Source: Salpingoeca rosetta (taxonomy: Eukaryota; Protista; Choanoflagellata). From it: DNA of 28,999 nt. Made by a program: the position numbers and the translations under genes. The number at the start of each line of letters is the position of its first letter. The stretch's first letter is position 1. The stretch lies in NCBI GenBank assembly GCA_033442325.1, contig JAWQFM010000019.1, forward strand, positions 922,143-951,141, read 5' to 3'. Of this stretch, positions 2,540 to 8,500 are shown piece by piece. The notes below the pieces were generated by a model that made no database searches, was not told where the DNA came from, and saw nothing but the letters and a program-made list of their open reading frames with translations.

Positions 2540-5500
2540 TTACACGTGAGACATGGTGGTCGTGGTCTCGCCATCAAAGTCATCGTAGAAAGGGCGGCCA
2601 TAAGAGGAGGTGCTGCGACCGCCATGGAGCTCGAAGGAGGCCCGGCTTGCCTGTGCTTGGTGGGCAACGACCATCGGTGGCTCTTTGACCGCGTAGGTGT
2701 GTTTGCGGAACGAATACACGATGCGCTGCACCTCAAGGACAATCACAACTAGCACCAGCACGAGGATTGCGTCTAAGCAGCGCAATGCAGAGTAGCAAAC
2801 AGCAGGGTACAAGGTTGAAGGNNNNNNNNNNNNNNNNNNNNNNNNNNNNNNNNNNNNNNNNNNNNNNNNNNNNNNNNNNNNNNNNNNNNNNNNNNNNNNN
2901 NNNNNNNNNNNNNNNNNNNNNNNNNNNNNNNNNNNNNNNNNNNNNNNNNNNNNNNNNNNNNNNNNNNNNNNNNNNNNNNNNNNNNNNNNNNNNNNNNNNN
3001 NNNNNNNNNNNNNNNNNNNNNNNNNNNNNNNNNNNNNNNNNNNNNNNNNNNNNNNNNNNNNNNNNNNNNNNNNNNNNNNNNNNNNNNNNNNNNNNNNNNN
3101 NNNNNNNNNNNNNNNNNNNNNNNNNNNNNNNNNNNNNNNNNNNNNNNNNNNNNNNNNNNNNNNNNNNNNNNNNNNNNNNNNNNNNNNNNNNNNNNNNNNN
3201 NNNNNNNNNNNNNNNNNNNNNNNNNNNNNNNNNNNNNNNNNNNNNNNNNNNNNNNNNNNNNNNNNNNNNNNNNNNNNNNNNNNNNNNNNNNNNNNNNNNN
3301 NNNNNNNNNNNNNNNNNNNNNNNNNNNNNNNNNNNNNNNNNNNNNNNNNNNNNNNAAACAGGTCCGTGGGCGCCAGCGACGCAACACGCACACGTGTCAC
3401 GACAATGCCCGTGGCGTTGGCAATGTCTGCCTCAATGCGCGCGTCACGTTCTGGTACTCGGGCGATTTCGTGTTGAAAAACGCGTCTTCAAATGGCAGCG
3501 GTAGCTCGATGCCCGTCAGCTGTGTCGTCAGCGCCTCCGCAGCCACAAGCGCAAACTGGAACTCGAGCACAAACTCCTGTGACGCCACGTTGCCGTACGG
3601 GTCCTGGACGCTGTTCAGAGTCACGCGCGCCGAGCGGCCGCTCACGTCATCCCACGCGAACCCGCGCACCAGGGACATAGTGATGCGGCGGCCCTCGCAC
3701 ACCATCACCATGTCGTCGTTCGCAAACACTTCGTCCAGCCCGTCAATGGTCATCTGCACCTCAAACCAGAACGGCTTTGCGCACTGCACGTCCTCGTCAA
3801 ACTCAAACGCAATCTCGTCCCCGGGTGAGTACTCCCCGTCCGCTGGCTCCGGGTACCCCAGGACCTGTGGCGCCGACCGGTCAATCACGCCCGTTGCTGT
3901 CGAAGAGTACTGCTCGTCAATGCCATCCGGCACCTCGTTGATCGACGCCGTGCACTGCGCGCGAATGCGCAGCTCGTAGTCGCCGTCCGTGATGCCGGAC
4001 ACGTCCCAGTAGATGGTCACGTAACCGTACTCATTCTCCATCAGTCGCAGGTCCAGCGTATTGCCGTCAATGTCACGCGCCAACAGCCACACGGAGGAGG
4101 CGGCGGGCTTGTACTCGACGTACACGCCCTCAAGCCTGTCGTCTTCTGTCCACTTGCGGTTTGCAAAGTCCGAGTTGAACGCAACGATGCGCAGCTCGCC
4201 AGGGTGGGAGGTTTGCTCGTCCACAGCTTGGTTCACCTCAAACGTCTCCGTCTCGCCAATCGAGCCCACCAGCTCAACAGGACTGCATGGCTGCAGGAAC
4301 TCGGCCTCCAGGTACACATATTGGACAGTGGTCACTTCATCGGTTGTGTAGCCGTTGTCGGGGTGCCTGTCTGCCTCGCACAGGGATCGCCAGCCAACAG
4401 CAACGGGATCATATGAATAGAGACTTGGTCCACGAAGAAGTGAGATTGTCACGTGGCGCGCGCCAACTGCAAAGCCCTCAAAGTCGATGGGGTGTGTCAG
4501 CGGATGGCCATCCACCATGATCGTCAGGCCGTCCTGGTTCGCACCGTTCAAGGTGAAGAGCTGTCCATGTGCAACGATACATCAACATCGCCACAAACAA
4601 GAACGCGCATACTGAGGTGAGCAGAAAGTTAACCACACAAAGGTGAAGCAGCAGCACATACAAGCGCACGTAGGGATCCAACTCAACACAAGCAGAAGTA
4701 TCGACGCACACACACACACCATACGCACAACACCCACGTTCAAGTCGGTCACACACATATATATACATACGACACCCACGTTAAAGTCAGTGGCGACAGG
4801 ACCGTCATTGGTGAGCAAGAGCTCGAACACAGCCGGCTCATTGGGTAAGACAGGTGCAGCAGGTTGCTTGAGAATGCTGATCCGTGGGTTCTCCAAGGCA
4901 ATGGTGTTGTTCTCGGGCGGGCAGGATGACTGGCCAGAGGTGGTGTGAAACACCAGCGTGCCAAAGTCAGGGTGCACGTACACCTCAACATCGAACACAT
5001 CCAGTGGATCAGCGTCACCAAGTTCAAACCCAGCGCTGCTCTCCTTCGCATAGCCTTCCTCCGTTTCCCTGCTCGTCTCCACCTCCGCCAGCCCCAACGC
5101 CGTGACGGAGAAATCAGCCCCGCCAGTGCTGGATGAAATGTCAAAGCTCACGGTGCCACCGCCCTCAAAGCTGCTCATGCTCTTGGACGATGACACAACG
5201 CTCTTGTGGTTGCTGTAGTCAAAGGAGAAGGAGTAGAGGGACCCCCCACCAGCAAACTTGATGGCGCTAATCTCTCGCAACGTGGCCTGATCTTCGCCAG
5301 TCGTGTCTGTGCCATCCAGGTTCTTGGCGTTGTCGATGTTGTCGTTGGGTGCGAACGCAATGCTCCTGTTCACCTTGCCCTGGATCGGGTTCGCGTTTTC
5401 GTTGGTCAGGTACTTGCCCGCCGTCCACAGCGACTGCACCTTCTCCAGCGTGCCACTGGCAGCGCTGTTGCGCACGTTGCGGTTCCGCTGCAGGTTGTCG

Positions 5501-8500
5501 TTCCACGCACTGATCGCCAACTCTAGCTCGTCCTTCAGCTGCTGCAGATCGGCGAGGTTGTCACCGTCGTCATCATCCGAGGCCTCCGCCTCCGCAATCG
5601 ATGCAATTGTCGCTTCGAGCCTCTCCTCAAGCTCCGGTAGCTCCTTGCTTTCAATCTCAAACACAGACAGCCATGTCATGACCTGTTCGTTGGCCTCCGG
5701 GTCCAGCGACCACGTCGTGGTCAGAGAGCGGTTCACGCTGCACGTCGTGGTATTGAACGAGATTACATCCGTATCCAGGAAGACGACGTTGAGTGCCGGC
5801 ACGAGGAACATGTCTGACTTCTCACCGGCAAGCATCGGGTCGTCGCTCGTCGTCACGTCAATTGTAAACGACCACACCTGCTCCCGGTTGAAGTTGTCGT
5901 CGGGCGATTGTCCGCCAAACAGGTTGGTCGTCTCCGTTTGAAAGGTGTACGGCGTCGACTTGACGCTCACGAGGTTGATGCAGTTGTAAGCGGCGATGGC
6001 ACCCGTGCACAGGTCAAGCTCGGCTTCCGTTTTGTATGGCGCAACGTCAACACCAAGCTGAAATCCACCAAACGCCTCATATGTCTTGCTGTGGAAGCGG
6101 AAGTTGGCAAACATGCTGGAGTACGAGGCCGTGGACAGACCGCCCGGCGGGTCCTGCACCACCAGCAGCGGCTTGTAGCGCGGGAAGGGAACCGAGCCAG
6201 ATGCACCGCGCGCTTGCTGTCCAGTCACCACCACCTTTTTGTACAGGATGACCGGGTCGTACGGCAGCACATGCATGCTCACACGAAACTGTTTCGTGTA
6301 TGGGTGTTCCGGGTCAACGGCCTCGGAGTTCAGCTCCGGACCGCCAGTCAGCAGTCGCAGCGTGGCATGCGCGTTGCTCTGCTCTGTGCCCGCGGCCGTG
6401 ACCACCTCGTCCAGGTCTAGATCGAGCTCGCACTCGTTGTAGCACACCTGGAGCAGCTCCCGCTGCGTCGCTGTCACGCCGACGGCCTGGTTGGCGGTTG
6501 TTGGGGACTCGCCAAGCAGGTTCTGCACCGTCACGCTGCCCTCAACAATGTCGCACGAGGCGACACCGGAGCCAAACTCCTCAATGGCCTTGACGGTGGC
6601 GATCGTCTCAGTGCGTTGCTGCATGACGATGAAATCAGTGTCGTCAGAGTACGAGCAAGAGTGCGCCACAGTTGGTGTGAAGGACACGCTCAGCGTCGGC
6701 TGTGGATGGTACTCAAAGCGAACGGTTGTCTCGTCATCCTCGCTGTCTTCCGCGTTGCGCAGGTCCGCATACTGCGAGCGTGAGGTGCCCAGCGTGGAGC
6801 TGAAGTAGCGCGTGATTTCCTCCCGCACCTCGCCCGACCGCACAACACGCGCAAGCCGCACGGTGATGATCTGGGCAGGCAGCGTCCATGTGGAGGTGCG
6901 GCTGGACGTCTGCTCCGTGCGCACCCACGTCGGGCAGTTGTCGTAGCGGAACTCAAGCACGCTTCGGCCAAGCGTACGATTGCACAGGCCGCCGGCCACG
7001 TCCACCACCACGGTGTCCACGGTGGTGTCCTGAAAGTCGACGTCCTTCCACTCCTTGCCGTCCAGCACATCGTAGTATGGGATGCGCGTGTCCAGGCCTG
7101 AGGACGTGTCTGTGCCGATGTAGAAGCCCGATGGGGCATTGGGCGCGCCGGATGTGTACTCCAGGCGCTGGAAGGAGTGCGATGAGTTGCCGTAGCTGAC
7201 GATGACGTAGACCGAAGGAGCCAATCACAGCGCAGCCGAGGTAGCGAGCCCTGCGAATCCGTGGTGGNNNNNNNNNNNNNNNNNNNNNNNNNNNNNNNNN
7301 NNNNNNNNNNNNNNNNNNNNNNNNNNNNNNNNNNNNNNNNNNNNNNNNNNNNNNNNNNNNNNNNNNNTGTGTGTGTGTGTGTGTAGGGGTGAGCAAAACG
7401 TGTGCAAAGAACGTGAGGGCTGGTCGTTCGGTGCAGAAAGGTGACATTTGTTTTGCACCAACCAGCTCAAACGACACATTTCCGGGCAATCCGCCCCACC
7501 CTCGTACAACAAACCAACACACACACACACACACACACACACACACACACACACACACACACACACACACACACACTCTCTCTCTCTCTCTCTCTCTCTC
7601 TCTCTCTCTCTCACTCACCTCAATCTGAAGGTCTGCGCAGGTGCGTGTGGAGTAGTAGCCGAGAGCGGTGTAATCGATGGGATTGGTGGCTGCAACGCAG
7701 TATTGCTTGTACGAGCCAGGCGCAGACCCAACATAGCGGTGCTTCTGGGAGCGAATGATGAGGCTCTCATGATACGAGCTAGGGCTCACAGATGTCGTCT
7801 GCATGGTGTTTGCCATGGCACAAAACCCGTCGCCAGCAAACACAATCTCGCAGGAAGAGGACTCAGAGCACAGCTCCGTGCACGCGTCAATGCCTGTGGC
7901 GAGCAAATAGCTGCCACTCACTCCCGTGTCGCTCACAGTCACGCGCTCGTACGAATCTGCCGACACGTCGTTGCCGTCGAGCTTGGTGGTGCGGATTAGC
8001 TTCAGTTGGTGGCACCACAGCTGACCGCTCAGATCTTCCTGCACCACAAACGCAATGCACCACTCGCTTCGGTCCTCGCAGAGGTCAAAGCACTCCTGCT
8101 TGCTGGTCACGGCCGACTCAATGCCGGACGGGTAGACACGCTCCACCCGCCCCGTTGACGGCGCAGTTGCCGCGTCTGCCGATGCGTCAGAGTCATCAGC
8201 CACCGTTGTCGTGGTCGTGGCAGGAAGCGTGCTCGTTGTTGACGCGATGAACGTGTCGTTGAGGGTGGCGAGGTTGAGCGTCGTCGTTGTTGCCTGTGTT
8301 GTGGTCGTGGTTGTGGTCGTTGTCTGTGTGGAAGTGGAGGTTGACGTTGACGTTGACTGCGATGTGGAAGACGACGTGGACGTGGACGTAAAGTGCTCAC
8401 CTGCGCAACCACCGGAACGCAGACACACGAGTGGTTGTGTGAGATCATGAAGTGTGTGTGTGTGTGTGTGTGTTTGTGCGTGCGTGCGTGCGTGTGTACA

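Follow-up and report, generated by a model that had tools for sequence, protein, structure and literature searches.

How did a block of about 1,180 amino acids, interrupted by a single intron, come to lie in a choanoflagellate gene whose upstream half is cut into many small exons, and what might it do there? The block occupies positions 3442-7267 on the minus strand of the 28,999-nucleotide stretch of Salpingoeca rosetta DNA analysed here (the window; C19:922143-951141 of the 55.4-Mb genome) and consists of two large exons of the gene PTSG_07442 (P0185). A preliminary description, made from the letters of the window, had seen in it a horizontally acquired Bacteroidota ectodomain fused to eukaryotic adhesion modules. 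The status of PTSG_07442 as a candidate for horizontal gene transfer (HGT) is already published (PMC7971027); new here are the definition of a trunk shared across kingdoms and of its undescribed central domain. The reading that we favour, with a probability of roughly 0.6 for the whole of it, is that the block is a trunk of seven domains, that this trunk is distributed over several eukaryotic lineages and bacteria of the Fibrobacterota-Chlorobiota-Bacteroidota (FCB) group, that one old transfer between them lies behind this distribution, and that the trunk functions as a stalk.

The trunk is a fixed series of a transthyretin-like, a CnaB-like and a macroglobulin (MG)-like domain, the central domain, a FixG_C-like Ig domain, an FN3-like domain and a Big_5 domain. 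Mapping from a bacterial model places all seven in the window, and the coordinates below are projected from that model, which represents the Flavilitoribacter nigricans homologue.

7015-7267, minus strand: C-terminal part of a transthyretin-like or CarboxypepD_reg-like beta-sandwich; its remainder and one more such domain fall in the assembly gap 7268-7367.
6706-7014, minus strand: CnaB-like beta-sandwich.
6223-6705, minus strand: MG-like beta-sandwich.
4897-6222, minus strand: central domain of undescribed fold, running from DPPG (6121-6171) through two hairpins and a helical hairpin to an LGDxDxxDVF loop (4981-5028) and SGQSSCPPE (4912-4950).
4288-4896, minus strand: Ig-like domain of FixG_C / NPCBM_assoc / MG type, coded by 4780-4896 and 4288-4560 with an intron between.
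3874-4287, minus strand: FN3-like domain, holding one of the motifs quoted in the preliminary description.
3553-3873, minus strand: Big_5-type bacterial Ig-like domain, holding two of those motifs.
3400-3552, minus strand: start of the juxtamembrane linker, with a false frameshift behind 3441.

All six motifs that had been quoted are present in the minus-strand translation of the open frames 4582-7224 and 3397-4551, three in exon 1 (6121-6171, 4981-5028 and 4912-4950) and three in exon 2 (3967-4008, 3835-3891 and 3781-3822). The AlphaFold2 model of the F. nigricans homologue covers 972 aa with a mean confidence (pLDDT) of 87.4 and was computed from an alignment of 74 sequences (A5); a first model, of the protein P0005 from a shallow alignment, reached a pLDDT of 55 and was set aside. 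The six flanking domains were assigned by VIA-align and Atlas, and the central domain matched family members only. Foldseek searches of the PDB and BFVD with the trunk model returned generic Ig and MG arrays only (TM-score ~0.1). Neither of the two window exons has a match in Pfam or NCBIfam, and over the central domain Pfam, its toxin families included, gave no match in 75 members.

The central domain measures about 440 aa in eukaryotes and about 340 aa in bacteria, with about 100 extra residues near the helical hairpin in the eukaryotic copies. It takes up residues 305-643 of the F. nigricans model, where the two hairpins lie at 332-413 and 535-604 and the helical hairpin at 471-519. The hairpin strands in this model are 33-40 residues long and their tips are of low confidence. 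Every residue that is invariant across both kingdoms sits in this domain: D-P-P-G, an S, a T, a W, D-x4-D and the E of SCPxE (alignments A2, A5 and A6; the window forms a row of A6, and the invariant motifs were located in it). The D-x4-D loop is acidic, and we liken it to the calcium loops of the DxDxDG type. Both hairpins have a high content of Gly, Ser and Thr, and the family-averaged hydrophobicity alternates strictly along them.

A profile built from the S. rosetta paralogues and five metagenomic relatives (A1) was searched against 1.84 billion representatives and found 2,797 cluster representatives at E <= 1e-3, 735 of them at E <= 1e-30. Counted as clusters at 50% identity, the family thus has at least 2,797 members, and neither Pfam nor NCBIfam has a model for its central domain. 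The two halves of the module are collinear in bacteria and eukaryotes, the profile matches covering model positions 1-867 or both halves, and an iterative search (jackhmmer) extended the homology by some 330-500 aa upstream of the module. Word-index protein searches reached less far: exon 1 found five metagenomic relatives only, the protein P0006 found S. rosetta paralogues together with bacterial proteins carrying LamG domains and tails of the type IX secretion system (T9SS), and the eukaryote alignment A7 gave two matches only.

Members among eukaryotes are the choanoflagellates S. rosetta, Barroeca monosierra and S. infusionum, Paulinella micropora, the diatom Seminavis robusta, the apusomonad Thecamonas trahens, and the amoebozoans Difflugia compressa and Soliformovum irregulare; a Thalassiosira member was taken from the supplement of Matriano et al. 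2021 (PMC7971027). The bacterial matches with names belong to Cytophagales and to metagenome-assembled genomes (MAGs) of Bacteroidota and Gemmatimonadota, and one is annotated as a LamG-like jellyroll fold domain-containing protein. A scan with the bacterial subset alignment A3 over prokaryotes, one genome for each species, yielded 456 bacterial loci, nearly all in the FCB group: Bacteroidota (Saprospiraceae and Lewinellaceae especially), Eisenbacteria, Latescibacterota, Calditrichota, Ignavibacteriota, Cloacimonadota and Fidelibacterota. Of 300 genomes sampled evenly over Bacteroidota, 10 (~3%) carry the central domain. Cultured carriers are F. nigricans, Neolewinella aquimaris and Phaeodactylibacter xiamenensis, with 3-6 copies per genome. 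Bacterial copies are 21-30% identical to the S. rosetta trunk, those of other eukaryotes 34-50%. The preliminary description had named a broad, vertically inherited eukaryotic family, or an absence of bacterial homologues, as speaking against a transfer; bacterial homologues are plentiful, and the eukaryotic family is broad in part, extending over three choanoflagellates, Thecamonas, two amoebozoans, Paulinella and diatoms.

The closest counterparts are the giant T9SS/LamG proteins of FCB bacteria (F. nigricans, P. xiamenensis and Lewinellaceae), which are uncharacterised. Their whole trunk of 1,000-1,350 aa is collinear with the window protein and shares with it DPPG, SCPxE and IDRxxPxxFGxPxPADG, the bacterial consensus reading PLLILRDPPGD, SG.SSCP.E and IDR..P..FG.P.PADG. 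The likeness to giant Bacteroidetes LamG/T9SS proteins that the preliminary description had pointed to is thereby borne out, down to the order of the motifs. As in PTSG_07442, the trunk lies between distal binding domains and a C-terminal anchor, and several paralogues occur per genome. The two groups differ at the ends of the protein: the FCB proteins have LamG (Laminin_G_3) heads and a cleavable T9SS type A tail (TIGR04183 / PF18962; present in L053, L077 and most bacterial matches), whereas PTSG_07442 has dermatopontin, EGF and PAN heads, a mucin stalk, a transmembrane (TM) helix and a cytoplasmic tail. Neither a LamG nor a T9SS sorting domain was found in PTSG_07442, whose N-terminal half matches DERM (PF14704, 9e-49) and EGF_CA (PF07645, 5e-8) only. 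A C-terminal TM-like segment with a short tail is present in 29 of 36 eukaryote-side proteins, as against none of 14 bacterial ones. Among the eukaryote-side rows, those without a label have EGF_CA, DERM, Ephrin_rec_like or fn3 domains and lack a T9SS tail.

Some members of the family deserve mention in their own right. A relative from a metatranscriptome (P0009, 2725 aa) joins the trunk to dermatopontin and MAR_sialic_bdg (7e-10), which, judged from its domain matches, appears to show that lineages mount different binding heads on one trunk. In P. xiamenensis (C82:156537-170769) two neighbouring open reading frames (ORFs) of 3840 and 4159 aa both contain the central domain, and tandem paralogues are also found in the MAG contig JAUIHP010000013 (L036 and L037).

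S. rosetta itself has 14 paralogues of the block on nine contigs, including a gap-free copy that is 97% identical (C23). Intron sites in the block vary among them: C4, C1 and C24 lack an intron at the place of the one in the window, and extra introns occur elsewhere near residues 435 and 700-733. Since the few introns differ in place from one paralogue to another, the block was probably without introns in its ancestral copy. The GC content at third codon positions (GC3) is 0.77 in the block and 0.72 in the neighbouring upstream exon, and since the two match, there is no compositional sign of a recent import.

Phylogenetic trees were computed with FastTree from 169 modules and with IQ-TREE (LG+G4) from 66 modules, the two window exons being entered as separate rows. 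The labelled bacteria form one clade (SH-aLRT 99-100) and every labelled eukaryote falls outside it. The three choanoflagellates form one clade (100) within a group that also holds Paulinella and the diatom; relationships inside this group are a polytomy, in which the diatom does not stand as sister of the choanoflagellates. Thecamonas and the amoebozoans stand in separate groups near the attachment of the bacterial stem. The approximately unbiased (AU) test rejects a clade of choanoflagellates with Bacteroidota (delta lnL 823, p = 3e-81) as well as a clade of choanoflagellates with all sampled bacteria (delta lnL 127, p = 3e-4). Midpoint and minimum-variance roots of the otherwise unrooted tree fall among the eukaryotes and not among the bacteria, a placement that may reflect differences in rate between the kingdoms.

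We conclude that the block is a copy of an old cross-kingdom module and not a recent bacterial import derived from prey. The trees make a single ancient inter-domain transfer likely, in either direction; for transfer from bacteria to eukaryotes we consider the odds to be about even. The passage between bacteria and eukaryotes would have happened a single time, and well before the 14 S. rosetta paralogues came into being. The module would then have spread within eukaryotes, either vertically with loss or from eukaryote to eukaryote, and in choanoflagellates the trunk would have been joined to dermatopontin, EGF and PAN exons.

Other origins have been weighed against this one. That the block is bacterial contamination or part of a chimeric scaffold might be suggested by the assembly gaps which border it on both sides (7268-7367 and 2822-3355). 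However, one transcript contig spans the gap and links the block with the spliced exons upstream of it, a spliceosomal intron lies inside it, its 14 paralogues are spread over nine contigs, its GC3 is native, and the neighbouring argininosuccinate lyase gene bears introns too; this explanation can practically be discounted, in keeping with the preliminary description, which had already argued against contamination. Direct uptake of a Bacteroidota ectodomain gene by the choanoflagellate lineage, followed by fusion to eukaryotic adhesion exons, was the origin which that description proposed. Choanoflagellates eat Bacteroidota, the architecture and motifs closely match those of the T9SS/LamG proteins, and the block is intron-poor in all paralogues at sites that are not conserved; in addition, the best bacterial BLAST match of PTSG_07442 in the supplementary table of Matriano et al. 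(PMC7971027) is Emticicia, a member of the Bacteroidetes. Against these points, the choanoflagellates are not nested in Bacteroidota but lie within a eukaryote-only clade with Paulinella- and diatom-related sequences, both AU tests reject the grouping, the identity to bacteria is lower than that to other eukaryotes, and the GC3 is native, so that we regard direct uptake as very unlikely and abandon the proposal in this form. A comparable case is the choanoflagellate teneurin, for which Tucker and colleagues reportedly proposed in 2012 an ectodomain derived from a bacterial YD toxin, encoded on one huge exon and fused to EGF repeats. What the two have in common is an extracellular block that looks bacterial, is large and poor in introns, and is joined to exons of EGF type; the YD and NHL domains of teneurin are unrelated, and the trunk is much more widespread in eukaryotes, with a phylogeny that gives no indication of bacteria as its immediate source.

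An origin from microalgae (diatoms) by transfer between eukaryotes was put forward by Matriano et al. 2021 (Sci Rep 11:5993, PMC7971027) and is compatible with an older bacterial link. In their supplementary table, PTSG_07442 / EGD77107 is classed as 'FOREIGN' with an alien index of 61.5, Thalassiosira oceanica is the top match for PTSG_07442, PTSG_11057 and PTSG_07019 (alien index 60-79), and metazoan or fungal matches are absent; ten 'DPT/Ca2+-EGF' genes are given there as candidate HGTs of microalgal origin. PTSG_07442 fits this S. rosetta family, having both DERM and EGF_CA and being listed in the table. The genes were named from their dermatopontin and EGF domains and a dermatopontin-like function was discussed, and in the passages concerned neither the trunk and its fold nor its T9SS/LamG context and its presence in Thecamonas, Amoebozoa and Paulinella are described. 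A search of the literature gave no match to PTSG identifiers in the main texts of papers. That choanoflagellates group with Paulinella and the diatom and not with their closer kin, Thecamonas and Amoebozoa, is in line with a microalgal source; yet the clade is a polytomy in which the diatom is not sister and from which no direction can be read, its rows are mostly unlabelled metagenomic sequences, and ancient paralogy with differential loss predicts the same picture. We therefore consider a microalgal source possible, without thinking it probable. The remaining alternative reverses the direction: a module of eukaryotic origin would have been acquired once by an FCB ancestor, its membrane anchor being swapped for a T9SS sorting tail. 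The bacteria fall into one clade, whose long stem (0.28-0.47) attaches among several deep eukaryotic groups, the midpoint and minimum-variance roots agree with this, and the module is found in only ~3% of the sampled Bacteroidota genomes. On the other side, all the flanking domain types of the module (CarboxypepD_reg, CnaB, FixG_C-like and Big_5) are characteristic of surface proteins of bacteria and seldom occur in eukaryotes, at least 10 FCB phyla are represented among the bacterial copies, and clock-like rooting is unreliable if the kingdoms differ in rate. A eukaryotic origin consequently seems doubtful to us, though worth keeping in mind.

As to function, the favoured reading of the trunk as a stalk follows from its place between distal heads and a C-terminal anchor in both kingdoms. 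The heads are dermatopontin, EGF, PAN and mucin regions in PTSG_07442 as against LamG in the bacteria, and the anchors are a TM helix and a T9SS tail, respectively; the bacterial tail we take to be attached to the cell surface. The trunk would be a rigid, probably calcium-stabilised stalk that holds the distal heads away from the C-terminal anchor, that is, the membrane-proximal stalk of a putative adhesion or recognition protein. Within it, the central domain would most likely serve in self-association, or in engaging a partner or a membrane through its hairpins, and it may instead process itself at the invariant Asp-Pro. An array of beta-sandwiches also recalls the alpha-2-macroglobulin, C3-C5 and TEP proteins. 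This likeness is generic: the global TM-score is ~0.1, a thioester motif is missing (C.EQ occurs neither in the two exons nor in the paralogue P0184) and VIA gave no match of TED type and none to CUB, so that the candidate was rejected. The MACPF / CDC proteins were likewise rejected, since the (Y/W)G(T/S)H(F/Y) signature is absent, hhalign of A6 against six Bacteroidota MACPF domains gave a probability of 0.1% and there is no match to PF01823.

A different function would follow if the central domain were a divergent beta-pore-former of the aerolysin / ETX-MTX2 kind, in a protein tethered to the membrane and acting against target cells as an analogue of perforin-2. The model has two protruding hairpins with strands of 33-40 residues and low-confidence tips, and the strict alternation of hydrophobic and polar residues in Gly/Ser/Thr-rich hairpins speaks in its favour; however, any sheet with one buried face alternates likewise. 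The sole sequence match of the family profile in the PDB is the natterin-like, aerolysin-type Dln1 (E = 0.003, on hairpin 2), which is lost with eukaryote-only or bacteria-only profiles. The nearest named language-model clusters are all Aerolysin, ETX_MTX2 or BB_PF (0.88-0.89), but Atlas scores below 0.9 with few shared features are a lead only. No Pfam toxin family matches any of the 75 members, hhalign gives no support against MACPF or one ETX_MTX2 protein (probability <1% for the latter), and ETX_MTX2 itself occurs in 1 of 401 Bacteroidota genomes. The likeness to aerolysin, ETX-MTX2 and natterin-like toxins thus comes down to long strands, Ser/Thr-rich amphipathic hairpins, the marginal Dln1 match and language-model neighbours. 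Those toxins have one pre-stem loop, whereas the central domain has two hairpins and a helical hairpin and is set between six sandwich domains in a giant tethered protein, an arrangement awkward for assembly into a ring. Taken together, a divergent toxin of this kind appears improbable. We would also give only a small chance to the idea that the domain is the founder of an undescribed, surface-tethered family of membrane-inserting or ring-forming beta-hairpins distantly akin to aerolysin. If it were true, bacterivorous protists and surface-active FCB bacteria would share an ancient device to attack or grip their targets, comparable to perforin-2 in animal phagocytes.

Several points weigh against the reading of the trunk as an anciently transferred stalk. 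What was modelled is not the window protein but a bacterial homologue, which in the central domain shares about 21% identity with the window. Most metagenomic rows on the eukaryote side are unlabelled and were called eukaryotic from their domains, TM tails and contig context only. The trees were computed with LG+G4 or FastTree and no mixture model, and rooting on the eukaryote side gives no support to a bacterial donor. The stalk role is drawn solely from the position between head and anchor and from the beta-sandwich content, and a catalytic or self-processing site would account for the invariant Asp, Ser, Thr and Glu as well as a calcium site would.

The gene around the trunk could be followed from signal peptide to cytoplasmic tail. 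Its further features are given below.

7619-12380, minus strand: intron-dense N-terminal half of PTSG_07442, with signal peptide, dermatopontin, EGF_CA and PAN-like domains and a Thr-rich exon, in twelve exons of 48-780 nt.
4561-4779, minus strand: spliceosomal phase 0 intron of 219 nt (GT..AG) with a (CA)n-like repeat and one in-frame stop, splitting the fifth (Ig-like) domain.
2540-2773, minus strand: last coding exon, with the TM helix and a cytoplasmic tail of about 58 aa ending in -MSHV; stop at 2540.

The public PTSG_07442 protein is identical to the window in exon 2 (100%) and nearly so in exon 1 (99.7%), and maps to 14 exons of 156, 126, 174, 120, 69, 126, 126, 87, 366, 48, 78, 780, 2388 and 1161 nt. 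The exon sizes of 50-370 bp first described for the N-terminal half therefore hold for the first 11 exons (48-366 nt) and fail for the twelfth (~780 nt). Stranded RNA reads show transcription from the minus strand. For the intron at 4561-4779 the first description was exact in its coordinates and splicing is confirmed in two RNA runs: in X1 and X3 there are transcript contigs that connect 4560 directly with 4780, and read depth is near zero inside. The junction DFN/LF is continuous in P0001-P0003 and in the paralogues C4, C1 and C24. Splicing is likewise seen in RNA for the introns 8398-8565, 8646-8824 and 8874-9173 of the upstream half. The last exon was recognised by comparing the ORF 2540-3400 with the C terminus of the C23 paralogue P0184 and by the score of a TM-like segment; PTSG_07442 is a type I membrane protein.

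Two defects of the assembly affect this locus. The gap of 100 N at 7268-7367 is undersized, because a transcript contig has 452 letters between 7267 and 7626; it conceals about 440 nt of the large exon and an intron boundary or part of an intron. The length of about 1,200 aa and the single intron ascribed to the block at the outset stand, and its start at 7267 does not, as the exon continues into the gap. The gap-free C23 paralogue supplies 166 aa that are missing in the window, among them the further CarboxypepD_reg-like domain. The second defect is at 3441, where the reading frame appears broken. One extra base is present there in all four RNA runs and in the C23 copy, which read GACGGCGCG where the window has GACGCGCG; the inserted C is found in 21 of 25 reads of X21 and in the contigs of X1, X3 and X16. 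The missing base is most likely an assembly error. Because of it the public PTSG_07442 model is falsely truncated at 1938 aa (ending ...RALS), and the juxtamembrane region, TM helix and tail are lost.

Some further observations concern the C-terminal region and the neighbours of the gene. At least three paralogues have a cytoplasmic tail with -SHV at its end (LSLSHV in P0186; TTMSHV in P0184 and in the window gene), and as short motifs these ends resemble a class I PDZ-binding motif. In the C23 paralogue (L010) a run of six arginines stands between trunk and TM helix, in a region whose counterpart in the window is the gap 2822-3355; P0186 and P0005 have similar basic clusters. The six-arginine cluster is a possible proprotein-convertase or shedding site. 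The RNA run X21 (2026, same species label) shows fixed differences from the window at 3356-8400, of which 20 of the 32 listed have the letter of C23 and the other 12 are private, a pattern that suggests either a different strain or gene conversion between the window and C23 copies. On the plus strand at 74-2189 lies the argininosuccinate lyase gene (Lyase_1, 1e-65), whose introns are crowded with (CA)n and (CTCA)n microsatellites, as are most of the introns in the window. A divergently transcribed neighbour at 13670-20400 (plus strand), with signal peptide, dermatopontin, Sushi repeats and small exons, forms a head-to-head pair with PTSG_07442. Farther on, at 22618-23820 (plus strand), a single open frame of 400 aa contains NHL repeats (8.5e-23) and matches the TEN_NHL teneurin model (2e-18), with a Thr-rich stretch before it.

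For the annotation of S. rosetta, these results flag two assembly defects at the PTSG_07442 locus, by which the public model is affected, and they imply that the published alien-index call for the gene rests on the trunk and not on its dermatopontin and EGF domains. For the family, they mean that one seven-domain trunk is common to T9SS cargo of FCB bacteria and to membrane proteins of at least five eukaryotic lineages. Its central domain, with ~340-440 aa and no recognised fold, offers a concrete target for structural and functional work in the tractable S. rosetta and in cultured Saprospiria.

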